From positions 81,852,389 to 81,916,388 of the forward strand of contig NC_068984.1 in assembly GCF_001194135.2 (NCBI RefSeq): a stretch of DNA of 64,000 nt. The letters are read 5' to 3'. A model generated the notes under the pieces. The model worked only from the letters and a program-made list of their open reading frames with translations, did no database searches and was not told the origin of the DNA. This document shows positions 15 through 58,900 of the stretch, in pieces (positions within the stretch are counted from its first letter, which is position 1; each line of letters begins with the position of its first letter). This DNA is from Octopus bimaculoides (lineage: Eukaryota). The position numbers and the translations under genes were made by a program.

Positions 15-231
15 GTTTCAAATTTTGGCACAAGGCCAGCAATTTCGGGGAGGGGGTAAGTCGATGGTAACGGCCCCAACATTGAACTGGTCCTTATTTT
101 ATCGACCCCGACAACATGAAAGTCAAAGTCGACCTCGGCGGAATTTGAACTTAGAACGTAAAGACGGATGAAATGCCGCTAAGCATTTTGCCCGACGTGC
201 TAACGAGTCTGCCAACTCGCTGCCTTATACA
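15..231 (-). mobile_element. tRNA-derived SINE, family A
   Basis: Head GGCAGCGAGTTGGCAGACTCGTTAGCACG, B box GTTCAAATTCC; 14-bp TSD ATGATATAA(C/T)ATTG at 1-14 and 232-245. Confidence 0.85.
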
Positions 232-371: not shown

Positions 372-612
372 TGACTCTTATTCAATAGGTCTCTTATGCC
401 GAACCACTCGATTACAGGGACATAAACAAACCAAAGCCGGTTGTCAAGTGGTGATGAGGGACAAAGACAACACAAACAGACGCAAATAAAAGGCTTTTGG
501 TTGATCCGGGGCTATAGTAGAACATGCCTGCCCAAAGTGCCGCACAGGGAAATTGAACCCAAGATTACATGATTGGGAAGCAAGCTTCTTGCCCATACAG
601 CCAGGCCTGCGA
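372..612 (-). mobile_element. CORE-like SINE, family B
   Basis: Reverse of GCACTTTGGGCAGGCATGTTCTACTATAGC core; similar copies at 10505-10870 (+), 18670-18830 (+) and 38080-38390 (-). Confidence 0.7.
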
Positions 613-731
613 TAAAAGATAGTCATTTTCTATACTTAGATGAATGGACAATAAATACAAAAAAAATGTACTGTTTATAGAATGTGATATTCTTCATTAG
701 AATAGACAATTAATGTAATTCTAGACTTCAC

Positions 732-2668
732 TAAGGCGGTGAGCTGACAGAAACGTTAGTACGCCGATTTTGAAGTTGTGTTGGTGATTTGGTTGAGAGA
801 GAGCGTTGTGTTGAGAGCGATGAGTTTGATTTTTGAGACTGCTGTTGAAATTTGTTGAAATTATTTATTGTTGAATTTGTATCTTACTCATTGTTGGGCA
901 TGGAAGCGGGCAGCTATGCTGCGGCAGCAGGCAAAAGCCTGTCAGCTGACATGCTGCAATTGAAAGAAATACAAATAGATGTAAAGAATTTTTTAAAATT
1001 CAACGAACTGTTGTGGAAGGAGGGAGATTGCCTTCGATTGACACCGCCAAATGACGCAGTGCAAAGGTCCGAAAGGAGGAAAATTGTGTATAGAACGCTG
1101 AACGTGGAGACCAAGAGAGTCGAAGTGGCTGAAATAGAAGAGTGTCTACGAGGGGTCAGGAAAGTGACCACATTTTATGCAAGAGACAGGAAATGCAGCA
1201 CGGTGGAGGTGCGCTTCGTGAGCGAGGAGGAAGCAAAAACGCATTCCACTGTGCCTTTGAGAACAGCAAAGTGGGCACTCTTACCGACCTACTGCGAGAA
1301 GCGTGTCGCAAGAATGAGGATAGGGAGAGTGCCACCGGAGATAGATGAGGCATGGCTGGTGGCAGCCATCCTCTACAACTGCGAGGACGAAGTGGAGGTG
1401 TTAAAAGCAGAAAAGTCGAGAGAAATCAACTGATGGGGTTATAGCCTGGAAGTTATGATCCACATAACCCTGCCAGACCTACATAAGATTGTGGAAGAGT
1501 TGGAGCTCCCCGACTGAGAGTCGTGGTGGAAGGGAGACCACCGATATGTTATAACTGCAGAAGTTGAGGACACATGCAAGCAAAGTGTCCGCATAAACAA
1601 GTGCAGATAGAGGTAGAAGAAGCAGTGGTGGTAGAAACAGAGGTGGAGGAGGAGCCAACGGCAGATAGAAAAAGAACGAGAGTAGAATCGCTACTAAAAA
1701 GTCCAAAGAAAAGAAAGGAGGAGAAAGAGAAAAAGAAAAAAATAGCAGAAGAAAAAGAAAATACGGAGAATCAAACCCAAGAACCAGAGCCAACAACAAG
1801 TAGAGAAAGACAAGAGCTAAAGAGGCGAAAATTGAGGAGTGGAAGGAAAGAGTAAGAAGGCAATTAGAATATGTATCTCAAACAGGGCAGCCTGCTGGAC
1901 GGAATTTAAGAATGTTGGTGTTTTACGACAAGGACATGGAAATAGAGAAGAAAATAACTAGAGTGAAAAACTTAGTAAGAATTAGATTGGACCACGACAT
2001 GTTTGAGCATAATGAAAGAGCGGTGTTATTGGAGAGAATAGAGAGGCTTACAGAATTATTTGGATACAGTATGAGACCATCTGGGTTATATGTCCAATAC
2101 GACAATTTACCTAGCGTTATCGGATTGGATGAACTCACAGAACATATAACAGACAAAAGATAAGACGGATACAAACATGTAAAATGGAACTGCGAGCTTT
2201 AGGGGACTCGTAAGACATTGCATCTTTTCATTTGTTTATAATTTCATTTCGTATTTCATCATTCGTTTTATGTACCCCACGTTTTGTGTTGTCTGTCTTT
2301 TGTAATGTCCCCTCTTTCTCTTCCGCCGAGGTCGACTTTGCCTTTCATCCTTTCGGGGTCGATAAATTAAGTACCAGTTACGCACTGGGGGTCGATGTAA
2401 TCGACTTAATCCCTTTGTCTGTCCTTGTTTGTCCCCTCTATGTTTAGCCCCTTGTGGGCAATAAAGAAATAAGAAACGTTAGCACGCGGGCGAAATGCTT
2501 AGCGGTATTTCGTCTGCCGCTACGTTCTGAGTTCAAATTCCGCCGAGGTCAACTTTGCCTTTCATCCTTTCGGGGTCGGTAAACTAAGTACCAGTTGCGT
2601 TCTGGGGTCGATCTAATCGACTGGCCCCCGCCCCAAAAATTTCGGGCATTGTACCTAGAGTAGAAAAG
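732..2668 (+). mobile_element. Family A SINE split by an ORF1-only retroelement
   Basis: Head 732-766, remainder 2472-2668; host TSD AATTCTAGA(C/T)TTCAC at 717-731 and 2669-2683. Confidence 0.85.
767..2471 (+). mobile_element. Non-autonomous Tx1/L1-like ORF1-only retroelement, copy 1 (decayed ~420-codon ORF, 900-2163)
   Basis: SYAAA N-terminus, VEVRFVSEEEA (RRM-like), VVVEGRPPICYNCRS*GHMQAKC knuckle, K/E-rich linker, C-terminal domain. No EN or RT. ~17-bp TSD AGAAACGTTAG(T/C)ACGC(C)G at 749-766 and 2472-2488; AATAAA at the 3' end. Confidence 0.8.
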
Positions 2669-3479
2669 AATTCTAGATTTCACAAAAACGAAGAGATGGT
2701 CACATCTGGAGTGCTTTTGATCGTAGTTTGCTGACCTCGGAATAAATATACTGAAAATCTAAGTGCATCATAGTCAACTGATCTGTCAAAGATTTAAAAA
2801 AATTAACAACAAAACGGAAACAATTTTAGTAGTTACAAGTATAATTAGGCTAATTATGAAAATATTACAGAGTGACAGCCTGTACTTGTAGTAATTTCTG
2901 TAGGAGAGGTTCAAAACTGTTATATTATTAGATTATATAGATATCTAAACATGTTTTTTTTTCAAATGTTGTGTGTTGAAGATGCGGAAAATGCTATCAT
3001 ACTTCTGGGTTTATGTATTCAAGTGTTTTTTTTTTTTTATAGAGCATTGCATATTTTAAGAAAATGAATTGTTATCGCTTTCAGCTTCTGTTGGGTAAAA
3101 AAAAAATTCTTCCGCAATATTTTAAAGATGACTTAAAAATGGCAAACTTGCTATCGTTTATTTTCTTGAACACAATACATATATACGTGTCGTATTGTCT
3201 CTCTCTATCTCTCTCTCTCTCTTACTCTCTCGCTCTCAGACAGCACCTGCTAAACAAAAGTAGCAAAAATAAAGACAAACTTTATACTGAAAAGCGAAGA
3301 TGAACAATATCCTACGTATCGCAATGAGGAAGCATTCTTTTCCTGGTGACATTCCATATAACCCTAAAACAGCCGGATTAACAGCATCCCATAAGCCGGA
3401 CTAACGTACCTCAAAGAAAACCGGGATATGAAACGCTCAGAATTAAGAGTGTACCAAAATTAAGAATATACATGGGTAT

Positions 3480-4300
3480 GTTTCCCGAAGATTTGAAGAA
3501 GACAGTCATGTTGACATGAAGTGTAGTCTCTTTCGGACTCGTGACCGCCACATTACATCATACTTCGAAGGCTATACATTTGGAATCTAAGAAGAAGAGA
3601 TTGCTATAAAATACCTTGTAAACGAAAGAGACAGTGAAGCTGTTGGAGCTGCAAGGTACAACCGAAAATGTACATTATGTCTGATTACTATGGAAGACAT
3701 CAGTGATTAGCAGCTGTCTAAAAATGTCATCAATGTACAACTTCCCTATACTACACGACGTTGTCGATAAAACTATACAGTGTCATTCGAAATAAAGACT
3801 GTCCTGGAATAAATATAAGAATCCCCTCGTTATTGAATGCATATACAATCAGCAACACGTGGAATATTTTGTTGGAACATTCCCATCAAAACTTCTGTCA
3901 AAGTAAATATAATGGGCCGGATATTGTTGTTTGAGACAGACAAGAAGCAGTAAGTACTGTCATAGAGGTCAGCTGCTCTACTAATATGAATATCCCTTCG
4001 AAAATTAAAGAGGAGGAGGATAACTACGGACAACTTCGAAACCCTAAGCTTCTATATCCAGGTTATAAATTCACATTTATACCAATAATAATAGGTGCAC
4101 TTGGTTTTGTGAATAAAGGCTTAAGTGAAAGTTTACATTAGCTAGGGTCCTCAGAAAACGAAAACAACCAGCTAATTCGCACATAACAAATGCAATCTAT
4201 AAGCGGAACAGTAAAATTATGCAAGACTTTTGTTTTTGTAATCTACATTCCCACGACAGAGCTTTGTATCTGGGTTAGAAACTAGCTCCTTCCTCAGGGG
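3480..4300 (+). mobile_element. R4/Dong-type (REL endonuclease) LINE, 3' fragment, decayed
   Basis: Broken frames give ITSYFEGY...EEIAIKYLVN, KCTLC..ED...SSCLKMS, NGPDIVV...VIEVSC (PD-(D/E)xK) and FIPIIIGALGFV. Confidence 0.75.
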
Positions 4301-4319
4301 AAGGTTTCAAATAATTAGA

Positions 4320-5030
4320 AACAACCTCCATATCAACAGCATCTATTTAAAACAAAGTGATGGTGGGAGAGGCATAATGTCAGTTCAAACAGCATTTGAA
4401 TGTCGCATTGTATCATACAGATAACACCTGCGGAAAAGTAAAGAAAGAAACGAATACATTACAAGCATATTCAAAAGAAGAACACCATCTTTCCAATAAG
4501 GGAAGAACTCCTGAGTTGGTACTCTGAGTGTACAACAGTCTCACCTGACGCAAAGAAAGTGGACTGAACCGCTTAAACAAAAGCTTAGAAAGGGGTGCAC
4601 TCATCATACCAGCAAAAAACAATGCATAGGTATATATCCCGTAGACTAAAGGATACGAGCAGCATTGACAGGAAGAGTAGCCTCTCATAGACCTGTGATA
4701 GGTAAAGTGCATATCATCTTGAAGGGTATGTCTTCGCTATCCAGGAGAAGAAGATAGCTACTGAATACCGGACAAATAAGAGAGACAATGATTCCACCAA
4801 ATCTCCACGTTGTGATAGAATATATCGGTTATTTTATTTCGGTGTTTAGGATATTATACACATCATCAACAGCTGCTTCAAATGTTTGCAAGATGTTACC
4901 TACTCTTGAGACATGATATAGATGCAAAGTTATATACAATGTTAATCGCAGGAAAGACTGTCCTGAAGGATACATCAAAGGCATGTCAGAACCAAAATAT
5001 ATTTATACATTTACACAATAAACTTGATAT
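4320..5030 (+). mobile_element. Second R4/Dong-type LINE fragment (RT thumb to zinc finger)
   Basis: IYLKQSDGGRGIMSVQTAFECRIVS, HLEGYVFAIQE, LLLRHDIDAKL. Confidence 0.7.
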
Positions 5031-6967
5031 TGTTCTTTGGAATAGGAAACTGAAGTCATGCACCTTTGTAGAAGCCAGGGGATGTGAACGTACTATCAAA
5101 AGTTTTTAAAAAAACACATTTATGGAACATACAGCTCTTTTACGCAGACTAAAAATTTTCATTCGTATCTATCATCATAAGTGTATCTACGAATTTACAC
5201 AAAAACTTACGAATACTTGGATTTTCTAAGAAAAAGAATAAATGAATAAATAAAACTGACACACGTCCTACAAATCTATTCTATTTGCAGTACAGTGAAA
5301 ATTATAAAACATTCCAAAGGCTCCCTACCTGAGATTCTGTAAATGAATAGATGCACATCCTTGATTGCGTACACCTAAAAAATGCAAATGTAAAAAGTAA
5401 TGATGCACAAACACACAAGCACTGAAGAGATATGTTCACATGAAATGTAAATGCAGTTACATACACCTAGTAGCTGCACACACTAACTCAACCACACATT
5501 TAAAAAAAACCTAAGTCTTGTCACTTTGTTAGCAACTGCCTGACAAGAACTCAAATAAATTTCCATTAAGAAGCTCCATTAAAAAGAGCTTAAATAAACC
5601 TCATAATACACTAGATGTATCCGTGGAAATTTTTACAATTATTTAGAAAACTGTGACATGGTTGAAAGTTTCAAAAGAATCATGAAATGTATAACTTTTT
5701 TTTGAAATTGTGTATTTTTTTAAATATGACTTTTGACGATGTAAAAACCAACATAGTATTGAATGTGTAGTCTTAGAAGATAACGTCTCCAAATGCTAAA
5801 TACCTTATTATACATTCATCACCTCTTTCACCTTTAAAGTTATATTGTTATTTTTCACTTTTCTCCAAGAATTAAACAATCTTAACTATGGAGCGAAATC
5901 GAAGACATTATCTTTCTATATGATATCATTCTGCTACTGTACGACTAAGTTCTAACAGATCTTAACTCTCTATGTTCCATCATTATTTTCATATCAAAGA
6001 AAAACTTCATATGACTAGGCTTGAACCCACAGTGCCAGTGAACGAAGTATAGTAGCTGCATCTTTGAGCTGTGAATTCTAAAATGAAAAATGTAATCTTA
6101 CAAGTTGTTCTGGATTCGATTTCACTGCATAGAACTTTGGGTGTCTTTTACTATGTCACTCCGGTAGAGTGATGTTCGGCAAATAGTACATTGTATGTGT
6201 GTGTGTAAATGCAGGTTTAAGTTTATGCTGCTTAAAGCCAGTGCTGTTAATGCTGTTCAGCAAATAGACATTGATAAAAATAAGTATCAAATTTTAAAAC
6301 AATTATTGGAGTTGATATGCTTGTCTATTCCCCTGAAAATGGTGCCACACTCCAATAATCAGTAAAAGACTAAATGCATAAAATATATATTTCATACTCA
6401 ATTTAAAATATTTATTTGTAGGTCTTATGAATAATTTAAATAATATAAATGGTGTATCTCTAATAGATCAGTCCTCGGTTTCGTTACATAGATTAGAGCA
6501 CAATAGGTAAGTAGATATTATTATAAAGGTGTTTGTGTCTCTGTGTGTTGTCGTCTAAAAATCCATATGTCAGAAAAAGAGGTACTCGTATACTTGTCAA
6601 CAGGGTGAGTATTTCAGCCGATTTAATCAATGATATTTTTCATACCAAAAATTTAATCAATCATATTTTTCATACCAAAAAGATCATCAGAGACTGCATA
6701 TTATATTATTTGTAGTGACTTTGATGGCGATATAAATGTGACATTTCATCCGAAGAATGATAGATAGATTAGAGTACGGTTCAGAGACAACCATGTCACC
6801 ACTCGCTGTAATCATGCGATCCAAAAGGAAAATTCCATCCAAAGACCAAAGGTTGAAATCCATTGGTTGAAAGCTTAGCTATAAGATCGTAAGACCAGAT
6901 ATTAACAAGATTTTTGCTAATGTCAATCCCAACGACATTGTTTTCGAGGGTCGATTGGCAATGGGTG

Positions 6968-7189
6968 TACGAGGGAATGTTAAAAGGTTCCTGGCTTTAA
7001 GGGTGTCGTGAAAGGCCTAGCTGGAGGCTCAACCTTCCGAGTTCTTTTACAGGGCTTAGAAAAACTGAAGGACTGCTGCAATAAGTGTGTAACTCTGAAA
7101 TGAGGAATATGTTAAATAAAATCATAATTAACTGATCCTATTGTATTTTCTTTTATCCAAAGCCAGGGTCTTTTCAGTACCCACTCGTA
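6968..7189 (+). mobile_element. Internally deleted mariner (MITE-like)
   Basis: TA-bounded imperfect ~30-bp TIRs (TACGAGGGAATGTTAAAAGGTTCCTGGCTTT versus TACGAGTGGGTACTGAAAAGACCCTGGCTTT); retains transposase C-terminus GLEKLKDCCNKCVTL. Confidence 0.75.
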
Positions 7190-7809
7190 TATTTCGTACC
7201 TGATACTCGAATTTATATCATACAGCACTTGATTCAACTTTTATTATGCTATATAGTGAAATATTAATTGCTTATCAATGAATCAGGTACGTGAAACTTC
7301 AGGATTTTGATCGCTCACCAAGCGACCAGCATATGGATCAGTGGTAGTTTTATTCATGGAAATTCTATTCATGGTAAAAATATTTAATTTTCAACAACCC
7401 GTTCACCTAGCTATGAATAAATGCCACAGGATTATAATATATACTGCTATCTGGAGCAACAGGACAAATGCCTCTGACGGGTATTATATTGGAGTCCAAT
7501 TCTACTCATGAATATATTTTGGAAAGGAACGTACCCCACTATGCTAACGTGCTTTAGATACATTGCTTAAGTGTGAGCCCTTAAGTGGTTTCCTAAATTC
7601 CAATTATTCTGCCATAAACACACATTTTACATACATATGTACATATGTACGTAATCCACGTACAAATATTTATATAAGCAGGTCTATATTTTTTTCAAAA
7701 GCGCACGTATACATATTTGTATACATGTGTTCTTATACATGAGAACGTTTATAATTGGGTTAATAGGGTACCGGACAATTAACGAAAAGTTTAGTGGTTC
7801 TACTATATC

Positions 7810-9679
7810 CTTTTCTGCTCTAGGCACAAGACCCGAAATTTTAGGGGCGGGGGAGACAGTCGATTAGATTGACCTCAGTGCGCAACTGGTACTTAATTTA
7901 TCGAGCCCGAAAGGAGGAAAGGCAAAGTCGACCTCGGCGGAATTTGAACTCAGAACATAAAGACAGACGAAATACCGATTTCTTTATTAGGCATAAGGCC
8001 CTAAACATAGATGGGGTCACCTCAAGGACAGACAAGACCACAGTGGGGACAAAAAACAAAACGAATGTAAATGAAATGAAAGTTATATAAAAATGAAAAT
8101 GGACGCATGGGCCCCACTCCTATGCAGTACCATTTGAACCGTTATATGTATTATCTACAATTGTTCTTTTTTTCCTTTAATTTCATACTTTTTTTGTCTT
8201 TAGTAGAACTTCATTAGTGGTTCGATATCTTATAAATCTACCACTGGTGGCAACTCTTTAAATTCCACCTCCACTTCTGGCGAGTCAACGTTATCTCCAC
8301 ACATCTCTTTCAATTTTCTGTAGTTTTCCTCTTCGATCAATATTGCCTTCATATCCTCCGCGTAGACATATGAAGGCACCTTTACTCTTACTATTGAATG
8401 TAACTTGATTATTTTTTCCTCTGTTTCAACATTTTTTGGGTAGTTACATAATATCACACTCCTTCTCCTCCTCGTATCTTCTTTCCTTTCTCTTGGATTT
8501 TTGGTTCTCTCTTTTCTTCCTCCATATCACCTTCATACAGTTGGGTTTCCGATATTTTCTCCACTGGTAACTCCACTTTCTTTTTCCTTCCTACAGCCCT
8601 CCTTCACAGTTTCTTTTCTCACCTCTTCTCTCTTCTTTTTCTGCTTCTCAGACGGAGAACTCATTCCTCCGCTCCTCCTTCTTTTCTTTTTAACCAGAGT
8701 GAATCCCTTCTCCGCTTCTTTTTCTATTGCCTTGTCCTGTACTACCTGGTCCACACTCTCATGTCTCTCCTCCTGTTCTGTTTGTGGCTTTCTTTGGATG
8801 CACCATGCCTTCATGTGGCCACTTTCTCCACATGTGAAACACACTGGCGGCCTACCCTCCACAGTAACTCACATCTTCTGGCAGCACAATCTCAACCACC
8901 ACACTGTTCAAGTCCTCTGTTGTTGCCTGAATCGTTAATTCGATCCCATATCCCCACTAATCTACCTTCTGGGTCTTTGTAGCCTTCAGTATCTTCCCGT
9001 CTTTCATATTATATGTTATGGCTGTCATCAGTCATTCTTCTTTCAATTCGGGTGGCACCTTACCCACTCGCACCTTGGCCACAGGTTTGCTGCAGTACGA
9101 AGTCAAGAGCACCCATTCGTCTGTCCTTATTGCCTCTGTGGAGTGCTTTATTGCTTCCTCCTCCGTTGTGAAGCGCACCTCCACAGTGGCATATTTTCTC
9201 CCTCTCGTAATGTATGTTGGGAATCTTTTTATATTTTTAAAACATTCCTCTATGGCCTCTATTGGTGCTATTTCTATCTTTCTCGTGGCTGCCTTCATGG
9301 TTTTAAATATAACCGTTCTTTTTGTCACGTTGGCCGATAACTCTTCAGGCGGTGTCAGCTTCAAAATGTTTCCTTCCTTTGTGATTAATTTCTCACTCTC
9401 CTTCATCTTTCTAGGCTCCACTTTTATCTCGCGGAGCTCCAACTCTCGCGTGTCTACTCCTTTGCTCGTTGCGGCCGCATAACTTGGGCCTGCCTCCGGT
9501 GTCTTCTCCATTTTCCCCACAATGGGAAACAAAACAACAATTAACGAATCAACAACGGCAACAATTCAATCAACAATGGTAACAATTCAATAAACAGTTC
9601 AACATAAACTCACGTATTAATTCACAGAGACCGCTAAGCATTTCGCCCGGCGTGCTAACGTTTCTACCACGTCGCCGGC
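7810..9679 (-). mobile_element. Family A SINE split by an ORF1-only retroelement
   Basis: Head 9679-9630, remainder 7977-7810; 20-bp host TSD TTTAGTGGTT(C/T)TACTATATC at 7790-7809 and 9680-9699. Confidence 0.85.
7978..9629 (-). mobile_element. Non-autonomous Tx1/L1-like ORF1-only retroelement, copy 2 (decayed ~425-codon ORF, 9511-8230)
   Basis: PSYAAA, TVEVRFTTEEEA, VTVEGRPPVCFTCGESGHMKAWC CCHC knuckle, K/E linker, C-terminal domain homologous to copy 1. Ends in AATAAAGAAAT; CGGT repeated at both junctions (7974-7977, 9630-9633). Confidence 0.82.
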
Positions 9680-9976
9680 TTTAGTGGTTTTACTATATCA
9701 CTGAAGTATCGTCCTGGCTTTGTTAAAGAGACTTAACTCTTAACTGTAAGGTTTAACTTTAACAATTTACTGCTCCAAACAGTAACGAGGTTGTGGAGTT
9801 GACAAGTAATTCATTGTCGTTCAGTGTCGTGTTTAATTCCATTCCTCACCCTACCGAGATAAATACTGCCAGTATCCAAAACTTTCAGTGTTTCTCATGG
9901 TGTGGAACAGCTCCCTGAGCGTGGAAGCCCCCTGGCAGGAGGGAAGGGTTGTGAGACTCGTAAAGAAGGAGGACAA

Positions 9977-10065
9977 GTACGAAGGCAAGAGCACGCATTC
10001 GTCTGTCCTTATTGTCTCTGTGGAGTGCTTTATTACTTCCTCCTCCGTTGTGAAGCGCACCTCCA
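9977..10065 (-). mobile_element. 89-bp fragment of the same ORF1 family
   Basis: 4 mismatches versus 9095-9183. Confidence 0.85.
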
Positions 10066-10504: not shown

Positions 10505-10870
10505 TGTGGTTGTGTGGTAAGAAGTTTGTTTCCCAGTCATATAGTTCTGGGTTCAGTCCCACTGCGTGGTACCTTGGGCAAATGTCTTCTACTATAGCCT
10601 CTGGCCGACCAAGGCTTTGTGAATACGAGATTTGGTAAACGGAAACTAAAAGAAGCCCGTCATATGTGTGTGTGTTTGTCTTTGTGTCTGTCCGCCATCT
10701 CTGCTTGACAACAGGTGTTGGCGTGTTTACGTCCCCGTAACTTAGTGGTTCGGCAAAAGAGACCGATAGAATAAATGTCAGACTTATTAAGGGGTCGATT
10801 TATTTGGCTAAAAATTCTTCAAGTTGGCGCCCCAGCATGGCCTCAGTGTAATGACTGAAACAAGTAAAAG
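10505..10870 (+). mobile_element. CORE-like SINE, family B, near full length
   Basis: GTGGTTGTGTGGTAAGAAG head, GGTTCAGTCCC B box, GTACCTTGGGCAAATGTCTTCTACTATAGC core. Confidence 0.75.
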
Positions 10871-11329
10871 ATAAACGATAAAAAATTCCAAATTAGCACG
10901 AAACATTTTTCCTTTACCAAATGGAAAATTTGGGGTTAGTAACACTTTTTATCTTCGTTGCTATTGTTGTTTACACCCTAATGACCTATAGCTTAGCGTA
11001 GACTCATAACCATAGGCGTTCCATTTACGACCATCAAGTTTTATTTTTCAAGTATATAGAACTATATCCTTCAATGTTTGTTTTCTCTTTTAAACGGGTA
11101 GGGTGTGACTTGAAAGGGATTTGGCTATTATTACTAGCAGGTGAAGTGACCACATATAGAGTCCCTCATTCTCCAAAAGCCATATTGTTGCTAAAGAAAG
11201 CGCAATCTTAAAATAAGTTACTTAATGCGCTTTCATAATTTTCCGAATTAATTTTTTTTTTAATATTTTTTCTTTACGTTATCAGCAACACTTATAAATA
11301 TTAGAACGCTATGCTCCAGTGTAACCTTA

Positions 11330-11713: not shown

Positions 11714-44221
<32,508 letters not shown>

Positions 44222-49667: not shown

Positions 49668-51460
49668 NNNNNNNNNNNNNNNNNNNNNNNNNNNNNNNNN
49701 NNNNNNNNNNNNNNNNNNNNNNNNNNNNNNNNNNNNNNNNNNNNNNNNNNNNNNNNNNNNNNNNNNNGATTGCTGGGAAACAATCAGGACCAGCAGTTGA
49801 GTTTGCGTCCACCTCATCTATAGCTAACAGTATATCTTCTTCGCTAATATCGATGTATTCCATCGTAACTGCCACTTTTGAACTGGTAATTCAGTACCTC
49901 ACTGATTCTGGTTGGACTATCTATGAGGGAGCCATCCTTTTGGAAGAAGGTGTCCTATCTTGCAGCGTGCTGATGCTGTTTCTTTGGCGTAATGAAAGAA
50001 GGCCTTTGGGTTTGACTTAACGTTTTTTATAACCCAGGCTTCTTTGTCTGCTCTTTCCCTCATATAGGACTGTTGCAGGCTTTTTTCAATTTCCATCAGT
50101 GTTGTTTTTAGGCAGGACCTTTCGTTACTTTTGGGATGTTGGTTGAGGCGATTTGCAACCTTCGCCCGTCGTCTCATGAGGATCATCCTCTCCCTTGGAA
50201 TTTTCTTCCTATTTGTTGTGACCTTGTGCTCTGGAGCATATTTCTGGCATATGGCTTGCACAACAGATATGAAATATTCTAGTTTCATGCCAATGTCTGG
50301 TGTGGAGAGTCATTTCGGACAGTCCTGTCTGCGGATCTCTTTTTGGATCTGCTTTGTGGAAGTACAGATTGGAGAGATTTCGGGTGCTTCCTTTAGGCTG
50401 TATGTCTCTAGCTACCTTTGGCCCAAACATAGACAGGTCTATTATGTTGTGATCCGAGACTAATGTCGGCTTCACTTTCACATCATGAATGATGTCTATA
50501 TTGTTCGTGAAGCAGAGATCCAAAATGTTATTCGCCCTAGTTGGTCTGAGTACAACTTGCTCTATGAATAGGGCATTGGTGAGGTTAAGCAAGGACTCCA
50601 CCTGTGCTTGTTTGCAATGAGTCATTCCTGAGAGCAGGAGTCCTTCGGGCCATTTGACGTTGAGGAAGTAGCTATCACCCATAAGAAATATGCCCACGTG
50701 GTGTTCCAGTTTCATAAGGATTTCTTTAATTCTTGTGAAGCAATCTTCAAACTTGCCTATGTGGTTTGGAGCATCCGGTGGGCAATACGTATTGCATATG
50801 ACTATAGTGTATTGTCTTATGTATACAATTGGAGTGTCACATACCGAATTTGAGTATGACAGTAAGACCTGGAGTGTGAGGTCGTCACGGATGTATACAG
50901 CAACTCCACCATGGCTCCTTTCCTTTCTGTCTGTTCGCAGTAGGGCATATTTTGGTACGTGTATTTCTTCATCCTCTACATCAGGGCTGAGGTGAGTGTC
51001 CACGAGTGCTATTGATAGGGCTTGATTGCATGCAGCAAGGTCTCGTAGGAAAAAATTTTTGCTTTTGTTATGATGCAACAGGACCCCAATATTTAGTAAA
51101 AATATTGGCGTGACGTCTGTGCAGCCGTTAGGGGAGGCCATCCTGTGTCTGTTGACTGTGGTGGTTTTGCGCAGTGGCGGACAAGATTCCTTGTTTGCGC
51201 TTGGTGTAGCCAGATCAGCTGCTGCACAATCTTTTGTGCCATGCACAAAAGAGACTCTTGCTCAGCTGCTGCCTTGTGCATAACCTCCGAAGAGCGCACT
51301 TCTTTTCTATAGTTTTTCCTTGGGAACGATTTTTGTCTTTTCTCATGGAAGCTTTTCTCCTTCAGGCCCCTGTAGTTTTGGCGGGGTCTCGGGTGAGCAA
51401 ACCGGCAGTTTTTGCCGTCTTCCCCATGCCAACAGTGACAATTAGTTGGTTGTCAATATA
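49440..51460 (-). mobile_element. CR1/L2-type LINE: ORF1 end, APE endonuclease, RT start
   Basis: ORF 50209-51246 (DTHL, RTDR...GGVAVY, MGDS, PTRANNILDLCFTN, SDHN); DEVDANSTAGPDCFPA at 49770-49875. Confidence 0.88.
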
Positions 51461-55559: not shown

Positions 55560-55995
55560 GAAACCAACAGAACTTGCAGAATCGCTAGCACGTTAGTGGT
55601 AGTTCCTCATTCTAATGTTCTGAGTTCAAATTCCACAGAGGTCGACTTTGTTTTTCATCCTTTCGAGGTCGATAAAATACGTAACAGTTGCGTACTTGAG
55701 TCCATATAATCGACTAGACCCTCTCCCCACAAATTTTCAAGATTTGTACCCATAGTAGAAAGAATTAGTAAATCTAAGTTCAAGGCGGCAAGCTGGTGGA
55801 GTCATTACTGCATCGGACAAAATGCTTAGTGGTAATTCTTCTTGCTTTACGTTCTAAGTTCAAATCTCGCCGAGGTCGACTTTGTCTTTTACCTTTTCGG
55901 GGTCGATAAATAAGTACTACTTTTACACACACAAGGGTTGATGTAATTGACTCGTCCTTTTTGCCAAATTTCAGGTTTTGTGTCTATAGCAGAGA
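55560..55995 (+). mobile_element. Two head-to-tail family A SINEs
   Basis: Two heads (~55565, ~55780), each with GTTCAAAT and GAGGTCGACTTTG; another copy at 56990-57200. Confidence 0.8.
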
Positions 55996-58900
55996 GAATT
56001 ATTCAATCTAGGTGCATTGAAAACATCAACTAATAAAGAGATTGCAACACCATAATGTTACAAACACTATCTACATGAAGCAAACAGTTTCGAACTACAT
56101 ACTTGAAAACAAATAATTACAGTCTTCACACTACACATATTATTTTTTTTTTTAATACAACAACATCGTCAATTGCAACAACTTTGTGATGTAAAACACT
56201 AATTAACGTTTCGAAGCAAAGCTAAACTTGATTGGTTTGGTAAGATTCAGAACACTCAAAAATATCATATAGTATACGTTCAACTGAAGCTTTGCCCTAC
56301 AAATCACAGAATCATTTGTAACTATATTATATTGTAAATTATATTTTCTTGACCATAGAAAAAAGTAAACATTGCACCAGTAGCAGATTACACAGCTCCA
56401 CATTGCAACTGTTTTTTGACACCAATCTACTCAAGCACTCACACCCTCACAACAGGCGTAAGAAGGATGTTGAGTAAAAGAAAAGAAGAAGAATTGTAGA
56501 AAGACCTATTTAAGCAAACTCATCATTATACACAAAGATCTTGTAAATCAAAAGATCATACTTCCTCCCAAATGTAAAAAGTAATATAAACTTACTGTTT
56601 TTATCGGAATTTATCTCTGATTCTGAAAACACGAAAAAAGAAAAAGCAAAAATATATTTTTAAAATATTTATTATTTAGAAGAATTCATACAGATATCCA
56701 TGGCAGTCTAACGCAAGCTATCTTTACGAACAGTATTTAGTTCCAGACTTATATGCGTGTTTTTTAAGCTTCTGGTTTTAACTACATTCACTCTGCCTTA
56801 TGTAATGTAGATGTGTCTGTGTCTTAAGATATGTGACGAAGACTGTTTAATATTGGTTTCATAAGAGGCCAGGTATATATATGATGAAAATATTCCACTG
56901 AATACTGTGTCAAGCTATTATCTCGGATCACACAATTTATTGTAAAACTAGAAACGATTAAATATGTAAAATAGTGTTACACGAACAGGGTGTTGAGCTG
57001 GTAGACTCGCTAGCACGCCGGGCGAAATCCTTAGCAGCATTTTTGTTCGTCTTAACGTTCTGAGTTCAAATTCCACCGAGGTCGACTTTGTCTTTTAACC
57101 CTTCGGGGATCGATAAAAAAGAAAGTATCAGATGAACACTGGAGTTGATGTAACCGATTTCCTCCTCCCCCAAAATTTCTGGCCTTATACCAAAACCAGT
57201 AGAGCGTCGCGCAAGTTTCCGAGTAGATATTTTCGTTTGGACATAGCATATTCTAACATACAATTTTGTTTTAGATTACACTGTACGAGCTAAGATCCAT
57301 GTCTCTTTACGTTTCTCCAGACGTTTATCTACATAAAAGCCTTTTGCCGATACAGAAGACTATGGACCCGCGAGCACACACACGTGCACATTCTTGTATT
57401 TTACAAATATCTTACTCTTCTTTTATTCTCTTACTCGTTTCAGTCATTTGACTGCGGCCATGCTGTTGCACCGTCTTAAAAGGTTTTGTCAAGTAAATCA
57501 ACCACCGTAATTATTTTAAGCCTTATTCTGTCAGTTCTTGTGTCGAACCGCTAATTTCGGCAACGTAAACAAATCAACACCAATTGTCAGGCAGTGGGGG
57601 AACAAGTATATGCAGAAAGATGCAACCCCACCCCATCACCACCACCACCACCCACACACGCACATGCATACACACACACGCACACACACATACACATACA
57701 TACATACATAAGTTTACGGTGGTTTATTCCCCCAATTCACTACTTCAAAAAGTTTCGATGTTTCTTTAAAAATCAGGAAAGAACACAACAATCAATACAT
57801 ACAAAACAAATATCTTACCATTTGAAAAGTATAACTGCTTGATCAATCTATGATATTCTGAAAATTGTAAAAAGTAATTAGTACTTTTTAGAAAATACTT
57901 CATTTAATTTAGACATTACTGCAAAAAAGACACCTAAAAACATTACTATATTCAATTGTATAAAAAGACATTCAGATCTTCAACTCTCGATAGAGAGCTA
58001 GAATATCAAATGTTTGAAAGTACATATCACATAGAGATGTAAGAGTTTTGCAAGATCACAATGCTGAGTTCAGAACACCAAAATAGGTCTTACAGATAGA
58101 AATGAAAGGATGTTTAATAATCAGACGTGTTACAGACTCCACAACAAATTGAAGACTGCAAATAGTATATCGTCGATGCATCAATCACATCATTCTGAAA
58201 GAGCTTGCACCCACTCCTCTGATATTTCGAATATTAAAAAAAAATAATAATAAAAAAACAGAACAAGTATTCTCAAACGCAAGAAGCAAGTGTAGCGTCA
58301 ATTTTTACATCAGTCCCTGATTACAACAATGAATTATGCCATCTGAGCAAAACTTGAAAGTTAAGTCACTTGGGCATGAACTCAGCAGTGAGTCGGTTGT
58401 AATTACAGGCGTCCAACTTTTCGGCTACAAAAGTACCTAGGGACACATGCTGCATGATAAATGAAAGTGAATCAAGAAATTTTGATTAATAAAAATTACT
58501 TCTGTTGTGAGGAAGAAACAATCTGTCATGTTATGGATGGATTCTGGTAAAAAAAAAAAAAAAAAAAAAGAAGACATGGGATATAATCCTAGAATTAAAA
58601 TTTAAAATAAAAATGATTAGAAATAGAATATAGTTGGTTTTGTCATTGTGATCTTTAAACTCTATAGCGATAACTCAAAGTTTGGTTTGGCCTCGTAAAC
58701 ATCATTGGAGTAATAAAGTCTCGCCAAGATACAAGAGATTTTATAAACACCAAGGTTAATAAACACTAAGTCGCATAATAATGAGTTTGTTCTCCCCTTA
58801 GAACAGGTGCAATTTTAATTATTAAATTTTGATTCTCGATATCAAATATATTAGCGCACATTTTACAATTTGTTTTACGTGCAGCGTGCATATCTTTTAT

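Follow-up and report, generated by a model that had tools for sequence, protein, structure and literature searches.

Why do two retroelements that encode only the first open reading frame (ORF1) of a long interspersed nuclear element (LINE) interrupt the same family of short interspersed nuclear element (SINE), both within its first 50 nt and both oriented like their host? The question arises from a 64,000-nt stretch of the Octopus bimaculoides genome (NCBI RefSeq assembly GCF_001194135.2, contig NC_068984.1, positions 81,852,389 to 81,916,388 of the forward strand), hereafter the window. The window has several assembly gaps (1336 N), and the usable bases amount to ~59,300. The two elements are called e1 and e2, and the host SINE family is called SINE-A. 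We propose that e1 and e2 belong to an octopod half-LINE family, that they entered resident SINE-A copies by nested target-primed reverse transcription, and that these two lineages have a real preference for the SINE-A head. The whole of this reading is tentative, with a probability of about 0.45.

SINE-A is ~212 bp long and has seven copies within the window, as determined by blastn against the SINE-A reference and by alignment. Five copies lie at 16-224 (minus strand), 33417-33622, about 55570-55761, 55784-55993, and 56994-57186, and the other two are the interrupted hosts. The composite loci are as follows.

717-731, plus strand: upstream target-site duplication (TSD) of host SINE-A copy 1, AATTCTAGACTTCAC, read directly
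732-766, plus strand: head of host SINE-A copy 1 (SINE positions 1-32), 97% by blastn to the SINE-A reference, with alignment
767-2471, plus strand: e1, ORF1-only retroelement of 1705 bp, pseudogenised (sequence reading, self-comparison, translation)
2472-2668, plus strand: remainder of host SINE-A copy 1 (SINE positions 15-212), 96% by blastn, with the SINE tail hairpin at 2644-2656
2669-2683, plus strand: downstream TSD of host SINE-A copy 1 (sequence reading)
9680-9699, minus strand: upstream TSD of host SINE-A copy 2, GATATAGTAAAACCACTAAA
9630-9679, minus strand: head of host SINE-A copy 2 (SINE positions 1-50; sequence reading, blastn, alignment)
7978-9629, minus strand: e2, ORF1-only retroelement of 1652 bp, pseudogenised (sequence reading, self-comparison, translation)
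7810-7977, minus strand: remainder of host SINE-A copy 2 (SINE positions 47-212), 92% by blastn, with alignment
7790-7809, minus strand: downstream TSD of host SINE-A copy 2 (sequence reading)

The outer TSD of host copy 1 comprises 15 bp, AATTCTAGA[C/T]TTCAC, at 717-731 and 2669-2683 (14/15 match), and that of host copy 2 comprises 20 bp, GATATAGTA[A/G]AACCACTAAA, at 9699-9680 and 7809-7790 (19/20 match). Inside these repeats, SINE positions 15-32 (18 bp) occur on both sides of e1 (749-766 and 2472-2489, 16/18 match), and e2 is bordered by a duplication of CGGT only (9633-9630 and 7977-7974). The 3' junctions fall at SINE positions 15/16 for e1 and 46/47 for e2, about 31 nt apart. Because the inner duplications of SINE sequence sit within intact outer TSDs, the simplest reading is that SINE-A was resident first and that the elements were nested into it.

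A preliminary description of this DNA had given the anatomy and coordinates of both composites, and sequence reading and self-comparison found them right almost to the base. It had assigned a separate 15- or 20-bp TSD to each host SINE and the host's orientation to each element, both of which were recovered, and had placed the 3' junctions ~32 nt apart, within about one nucleotide of our value. Its view that the SINE was already there agrees with the nested reading of the inner duplications, and its single gag-like ORF of ~420 codons per element, lacking endonuclease (EN) and reverse transcriptase (RT), was confirmed by the translations and the ORF2 search that follow.

Each element holds one ORF of about 420 codons, broken in both cases according to the translations and the tblastn frames. 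No remnant of EN or RT (ORF2) was detectable in e1 or e2 by translation, tblastn frames, or ORF2 search. The ORF1 remains are distributed as follows.

900-2163, plus strand: ORF1 remains of e1 (translations, tblastn frames, homologues P0001, P0009, P0016, and P0044, of which P0001 and P0044 are the nearest to e1)
900-1514, plus strand: tandem RRM-like region of e1 ORF1
about 1540-1590, plus strand: CCHC knuckle of e1 ORF1, assigned by translation and by alignment to the e2 knuckle, with a K/E-rich linker next in order
1846-2160, plus strand: C-terminal domain of e1 ORF1
8230-9511, minus strand: ORF1 remains of e2, with the ATG at 9511 (translations, Pfam zf-CCHC, tblastn frames)

Two frameshifts, one near 1515 and one near 1850, and three in-frame stops (1431, 1515, and 1565) interrupt ORF1 in e1. 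In e2, ORF1 is stopped at 9034, at 8959, and twice near 8530, shifts frame once near 8870, and ends prematurely at 8232. When the ORF pieces were searched separately, zf-CCHC was the sole Pfam match; it was scored in e2, not in e1, and also in ORF1 homologues. The DNA of the two elements is 68% identical over 171 nt and 81% identical over the last 58 nt, and their proteins are 42% identical over the first 180 aa. e1 and e2 are pseudogenised members of two diverged, old subfamilies, not close copies of each other. One homologous codon is stopped in both elements, as TGA in e1 (1431-1433) and as TAG in e2 (8957-8959). Since the two stops differ and the codon is Trp or Cys in intact homologues, we read them as two independent mutations; stop-to-Trp RNA editing was considered for the common stop and rejected on the same grounds.

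The fold of ORF1 was examined through an intact 379-aa ORF from O. vulgaris (copy L002, described below). The AlphaFold model reached a pLDDT of 85-94 over residues 30-240, and its best Foldseek matches were tandem-RRM proteins, e.g. IMP3 RRM12, SFPQ/NONO, and nucleolin RBD12. Together with the CCHC knuckle, these matches lead to a predicted type I LINE ORF1p, with two RRM-like domains and CCHC, that has an additional C-terminal domain. The RRM plus CCHC architecture is typical of Tx1-like elements in non-mammalian animals (PMC5203782).

An isolated 90-bp fragment at 9976-10065 (minus strand) is 95.6% identical to e2 positions 447-536, in the RRM region. The fragment, 311 bp upstream of host SINE copy 2 and between unrelated flanks, could represent a local duplication or repair filler.

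Homologues were sought in a profile search of 1.84 billion representatives, which resulted in 438 matches (clusters at 50% identity). The homologues that could be traced came from O. bimaculoides, O. sinensis, O. vulgaris, Argonauta hians, or unnamed sequencing runs, and all that were checked were octopod. Of two word-indexed protein searches, the first gave 4 matches (O. bimaculoides proteins) and the second, which used an alignment, gave 13, of which few had contigs. A scan of metagenome, prokaryote-genome, and viral contigs found no ORF1 relatives. Intact ORF1 homologues range from 379 to 623 residues, and O. bimaculoides itself has intact proteins of 404 aa and 453 aa.

Two further copies define the layout of the family. 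L002 (O. vulgaris, 1.73 kb) is complete and has the intact 379-aa ORF, a 3' tail of the same kind as in e1 and e2, and its own 11-bp TSD, TGCTGGGTTCG. L001, from O. bimaculoides, is an e2-like copy with the same ORF1-only content. No ORF2 remnant was detectable in any of the four copies (e1, e2, L001, and L002), which share the ~1.7-kb ORF1-only layout across three subfamilies and at least two species. The 3' untranslated regions (UTRs) of e2 and L001 align at 77% immediately after ORF1. Comparison of the first 159 codons of e2 and L001 gave pN 0.19, pS 0.71, and a dN/dS of 0.09; ORF1 was therefore under purifying selection during the divergence of the e2 and L001 lineages. The half-LINE is an element of ~1.7 kb with a short 5' UTR, a complete type I ORF1, and a ~250-nt 3' UTR of the L1/Tx1 group, and the loss of ORF2 is a trait of the family rather than an accident of e1 and e2.

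Several copies show further rearrangements. The e2-like element of L001 (4474-6386 of O. bimaculoides CM046615.1) shows a circular permutation with its break at e2 position 609/611: positions 611-1651 are followed by a 14-18-nt linker and then by positions ~1-609, so that the 3' end is joined to the 5' end. The break lies within one or two codons on both sides, which suggests a tandem or circle-derived rearrangement. L012, from O. vulgaris, is a distant ORF1 copy that has no 3' tail and lies between direct repeats (5712-5790 and 7713-7782); the repeated unit is about 70-80 bp of flanking sequence, not an ordinary TSD. ORF1-derived segments also occur in four octopus gene models (P0007, P0034, P0102, and P0158) with WD40, LDL-receptor-A, astacin, or ISXO2-like transposase domains, and these segments could be exonised element pieces or annotation chimeras.

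The 3' ends connect the half-LINE with two other kinds of element. The last ~60 nt of e1, e2, L001, and L002 align with those of two LINE copies, L003 and L016, and the common tail ends in a 4-bp hairpin with a CTTGT or CTTAT loop followed by AATAAAGAAA, without poly(A). The 3' end of SINE-A is the same module (TTTCGGGCCTTGTGCCTAGAGTAGAAAAG). In the window, the tails of the elements lie as follows.

2443-2471, plus strand: 3' tail of e1, hairpin GCCC-CTTGT-GGGC (2447-2459), then AATAAAGAAATA, no poly(A)
7978-8005, minus strand: 3' tail of e2, hairpin GGGC-CTTAT-GCCT (8001-7989), then AATAAAGAAAT
2321-2406, plus strand: SINE-A core in the e1 3' UTR (SINE positions 82-166, 86 bp, 96%; self-comparison, blastn, tail alignment)

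Within the window, a single degenerate 27-mer picks out the tails of both elements and of three SINE-A copies, where chance would give 0 matches. Over twelve tails, the hairpin is paired in 91.7% of cells compared with 73% in shuffles, and compensatory changes on both sides were found in three of the four hairpin pairs. The observed score was reached by 0/500 shuffles, and none of the slid registers of the tail alignment attained the observed covariation. A regular expression for the tail motif returned no extra 5'-truncated copies in the loci that were read. A 24-26-nt tail segment occurs on each side of the SINE-A core in the e1 3' UTR (at 2287-2312 and 2416-2439), and this 3' UTR looks like a template-switch chimera with a SINE carrying a long LINE-type tail.

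L003 and L016 are autonomous relatives of the half-LINE. L003, from O. sinensis, has an ORF1 of 615 codons, with 33% identity to that of e1, and its ORF2, which is frameshifted, begins about 30 nt 3' of ORF1, starts with MANLRIGCLNVRGL, and has the domains Exo_endo_phos, RVT_1, and zf-RVT. L016, a contig of JGI metagenome 3300045642, belongs to the same lineage and has an intact RT plus zf-RVT of 574 residues. The closest solved structure to the RT of these relatives is human L1 ORF2p (1.5e-21), with R2 at about 1e-12, and this comparison places the RT of L003 and L016 in the L1 group and no more narrowly. L015 is a hybrid in which a deletion has fused the N-terminus of ORF1 to the C-terminus of ORF2. 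Both readable autonomous copies adjoin long (ATT)n runs.

L003, 5700-11400: autonomous relative with a long (ATT)n run directly 3' and another preceding it
L016, 1746-2105: autonomous relative with a long (ATT)n run directly 3', in an independent record

This position (2/2) indicates that the autonomous lineage is probably an (ATT)n microsatellite-specific LINE of octopods. Microsatellite specificity is well known in the Tx1 clade (PMC4494074), and L1-Tx1 is the only L1-like superfamily in a table of recently active insertions of O. vulgaris (PMC13282606). On both counts, a Tx1-like label for the group is reasonable; it is plausible and unproven. Variants of ORF1p with RRM and CCHC have been described as consistent with Tx1 (PMC5203782), and, of the Tx1-clade traits, the type I ORF1p was found here, whereas an ORF2 with apurinic endonuclease (APE), RT, and zinc-binding domains is absent from e1 and e2 and present in the relatives. 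The names of the ORF2 homologues were uninformative for Tx1 versus L1.

One protein annotated as belonging to a "Herbaspirillum sp." metagenome-assembled genome (P0162) is 67% identical to an octopus LINE ORF2. This protein and the octopus-type LINE contigs of JGI sample 3300045642 indicate that microbial data sets have been contaminated with host DNA.

A tail common to LINE, half-LINE, and SINE-A would be the signature of a stringent LINE/SINE partnership. As this tail is shared by the three, mobilisation in trans is the natural mechanism, and we infer with good support that the ORF2p of this LINE group has mobilised both SINE-A and the half-LINE. The features expected of a HAL1-like family were found: ORF1 without ORF2 and with its own TSDs, a 3' end in common with an autonomous LINE, and an intact ORF1 under selection. 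The host SINE-A, for its part, has the LINE-derived 3' tail and the TSDs (15 and 20 bp) expected of a tRNA-derived SINE.

The preliminary description had proposed a HAL1-like ORF1-only family mobilised in trans. The first part is well supported by the four copies in three subfamilies, the intact ORF and TSD of L002, and the dN/dS of 0.09; the second is likewise well supported as an inference, through relatives that combine APE, RT, and zf-RVT with the same ORF1 type and tail. It had named two independent ORF2 deletions as the finding that would overturn this family, and the shared layout, the intact L002, and the selection on ORF1 speak otherwise. It had recommended a profile search against Tx1/L1 ORF1p; the profile search run here gave the 438 matches, octopod wherever checked, and Pfam gave the zf-CCHC match. 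The search that it had suggested for an autonomous Tx1 with the same 3' UTR succeeded in part: L003 and L016 have the tail, but neither is close to e1 or e2.

In the mechanism that we propose, the element RNA would be coated by its own ORF1p, and the ORF2p of an autonomous relative, with EN and RT, would reverse-transcribe it in trans by way of the common 3' hairpin tail. SINE-A, with the same tail type, would depend on the same kind of machinery. The elements would then have entered resident SINE-A copies by target-primed reverse transcription, duplicating 18 bp (e1) or 4 bp (e2) of the head, and both lineages may prefer the SINE-A head either for its sequence or for Pol III-associated chromatin.

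The preference is proposed because of the double hit in a ~50-nt interval in one orientation (2/2) and because relatives are target-specific for (ATT)n. SINE-A heads (positions 1-55 of seven copies) make up ~350 of the ~59,300 usable bases, i.e. 0.6%, in keeping with the preliminary description, which had put this interval at well under 1% of the window. The chance that two of two insertions fall in heads is about 4e-5, and about 9e-6 for two that must also share the orientation of their host; both figures are post hoc and overstate the evidence, since it was the odd look of the case that led to its selection. Multicopy sequences, other transposons included, are frequent targets of Tx1 lineages (PMC4494074), and the same source sets target specificity at more than about 20% of copies flanked by the target.

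Several findings weigh against the proposed reading. The case for the preference consists of two insertions, picked out for their odd appearance. L002, which is the only other complete copy and belongs to a distant subfamily, lies outside SINE-A-like sequence; its target has no significant similarity to the SINE-A head (1674/2000 shuffles equal or better), and a TAGCA(A)CGCC resemblance noted there by eye was dropped after this shuffle test. Distant copies in L012 and L013 also lie outside SINE-A. The 14-18-nt linker of L001 resembles, by eye, the segment duplicated around e1, but this similarity is marginal (p 0.03-0.06). The junctions are 31 nt apart, the duplications measure 18 versus 4 bp, and the nick sites have no common motif, all of which makes a strict sequence-specific endonuclease for the SINE-A head unlikely. 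The SINE-A copies whose flanks were read share the tail type, yet their surroundings are ordinary AT-rich DNA; as these copies lack such a target, specificity arising from a shared endonuclease is not evident. ARAGORN and Rfam found no tRNA similarity in the SINE-A head. Nor did an autonomous partner closely related to e1 or e2 come to light, and the assignment of the relatives to Tx1 rather than L1 is putative.

If the preference exists, a loose one, e.g. tethering to an occupant of the head, fits better than a strict recognition sequence. A pattern for the junction (element tail, gap, SINE positions 47-58) gave two matches in metagenome contigs, both unrelated. The SINE-head targeting put forward in the preliminary description is thus suggestive (n = 2): the double co-oriented hit in the window favours it, whereas L002, L012, and L013 lie elsewhere and L001 is marginal.

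The preliminary description had also called the SINE tRNA-derived, with a Pol III promoter in its head that the elements disable. By alignment, the head contains a B-box-like GTTCAAATTCC and two A-box candidates, and ARAGORN and Rfam detected no tRNA in it. Because these programs give no support to a tRNA-derived Pol III head, the disabling of the promoter would be at most a side effect of insertion. A pattern for the SINE-A core had no match in genome and viral contigs, and SINE sequence strings had none in a literature search.

The strongest alternative retains the same family and nested target-primed reverse transcription and dispenses with any preference, so that e1 and e2 would be two independent chance landings in SINE-A heads. 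SINEs account for about 8-12% of octopus genomes (PMC13282606), and most of the findings just listed fit this view directly: the copies of L002, L012, and L013 outside SINE-A, the lack of a common nick motif, the unequal duplications, and the insertion of same-tail SINE-A copies elsewhere. Against it stand the small share of the window occupied by heads, the probability of about 1e-5 for two co-oriented hits, and the demonstrable (ATT)n specificity of relatives in the group. We regard coincidence as somewhat unlikely, and as the main rival.

L1 is known to form chimeras by RT template jumping, e.g. U6/L1, and each composite might have arisen in a comparable single integration. Here, the RT would have jumped end-to-end between tail-sharing RNAs, from a SINE-A 3' fragment to the element RNA and on to a SINE-A 5' fragment, with the outer TSD belonging to the whole chimera and no prior SINE at the site. 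Such jumps would account for the orientation and the variable junctions without endonuclease specificity, SINE-A and the elements do share an RT-recognition tail, and e1 itself has a template-switch-like SINE core between duplicated tail segments in its 3' UTR. On the other hand, each composite needs two jumps and, for e1, an 18-nt overlap of the SINE fragments that resembles an ordinary TSD, and no chimera with other partners was seen in about 130 kb of octopus DNA that was read. This origin is distinctly improbable.

A single founding insertion could have been followed by retrotransposition of the composite as a unit through the SINE 3' tail, which the same type of machinery could use as a substrate; in this case, the outer TSDs would be those of the composite. 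The inner junctions differ and the elements are only 68% similar, so at least two founding insertions into heads would still be needed; moreover, Pol III would be expected to stop at the T4 runs at the element start, and a promoter of the element's own would exclude the upstream SINE head. We consider this highly improbable. That e1 and e2 are independently ORF2-deleted copies of ordinary autonomous LINEs, with no ORF1-only family behind them, has next to no chance of being correct: internal-deletion derivatives such as L015 exist, but the layout and length are the same in four copies that span three subfamilies and at least two species, L002 has an intact ORF and its own TSD, and the e2 and L001 3' UTRs are 77% alike directly after ORF1, with the dN/dS at 0.09.

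The half-LINE family with nested insertion and a head preference is thus the reading that we favour. Its boldest form, in which a long-lived half-Tx1 lineage of octopods homes into the promoter-bearing head of a SINE that competes for the same RT, guided by the sequence or by the Pol III complex, is possible and still doubtful. If true, this would be parasite-on-parasite targeting: the element could land where it does no harm and would at the same time silence its rival's copies.

The window also contains repeats that are unrelated to e1 and e2. A second, unrelated SINE-like family occurs at 500-615 (plus strand) and 10540-10890 (minus strand), with …GTTTCAGTCATTACACTGAGGCCATGCTGG… and a shared 3' part. 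A LINE endonuclease and the start of an RT at 49770-51300 (minus strand) are interrupted by an assembly gap; this LINE (49.8-51.3 kb) was considered as a relative of e1 and e2 and rejected as unrelated. Remains of an RT and RNase H of the long terminal repeat (LTR) type lie at 23284-24581 (minus strand), and a mariner helix-turn-helix (HTH) fragment lies at 21869-22237 (plus strand).

Among known systems, UnaL2 and UnaSINE1 form a stringent LINE/SINE pair with a common 3' stem-loop (Kajikawa and Okada 2002, as summarised in PMC4494074). The octopod tails resemble theirs in having a conserved short hairpin a few nucleotides from the 3' end, which here extends over LINE, SINE, and half-LINE and shows compensatory changes. 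The two cases differ in that the Una pair belongs to the L2 clade and that tail recognition in octopods is putative. The locus links an (ATT)n-specific LINE, a high-copy SINE, and a half-LINE to one hairpin tail, and would offer a system for studying how RT recognition and target choice are shared.

Pol III-directed integration occurs in the TRE elements of Dictyostelium and in yeast Ty3, which insert beside tRNA genes. The association of e1 and e2 with DNA bearing candidate A and B boxes is similar, and insertion at differing points of a short interval would be in line with tethering to a protein complex rather than to a sequence. The difference is that TRE and Ty3 insert beside tRNA genes, not between the boxes, and that TFIIIC on the SINE-A head is purely hypothetical.

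We know of no earlier report of a SINE head as the target of a Tx1 or other LINE-type element. Target-specific cases in the Tx1 clade include Tx1L into Tx1D, Keno into U2, Kibi and Koshi into microsatellites, and Tx1-Mar together with SINEU into Mariner-N4_AMi (PMC4494074). The octopod autonomous relatives are alike in their RRM/CCHC ORF1 followed by APE, RT, and zf-RVT and in their (ATT)n specificity; so are the non-autonomous partner nested in another transposon and the SINE on the same machinery. In contrast, e1 and e2 have neither EN nor RT, and their preference is unproven and not strictly site-specific. If the preference for the SINE head is real, this would be the first LINE-type element known to us that uses a SINE head as a safe haven, and it would bear on what limits SINE activity in octopuses.

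ORF1-only derivatives of LINEs have been documented mainly as HAL1 (half-L1) in mammals. The HAL1 elements described in PMC5753468 and the octopod half-LINE are alike in being non-autonomous, in having kept a functional ORF1 and lost ORF2, and in their amplification through the ORF2p of the parent clade, which for the octopod family we infer. HAL1 differs in its type II ORF1 (coiled coil, RRM, and C-terminal domain; Transposase_22) and its poly(A) end, whereas the octopod family has a type I ORF1, a hairpin tail without poly(A), an octopod host, and great diversity (438 clusters at 50% identity). It is a second ORF1-only example, deeply diversified and under selection, from a different LINE group and a different phylum, and would show that the retention of ORF1 with a borrowed ORF2p is a recurrent and stable strategy.

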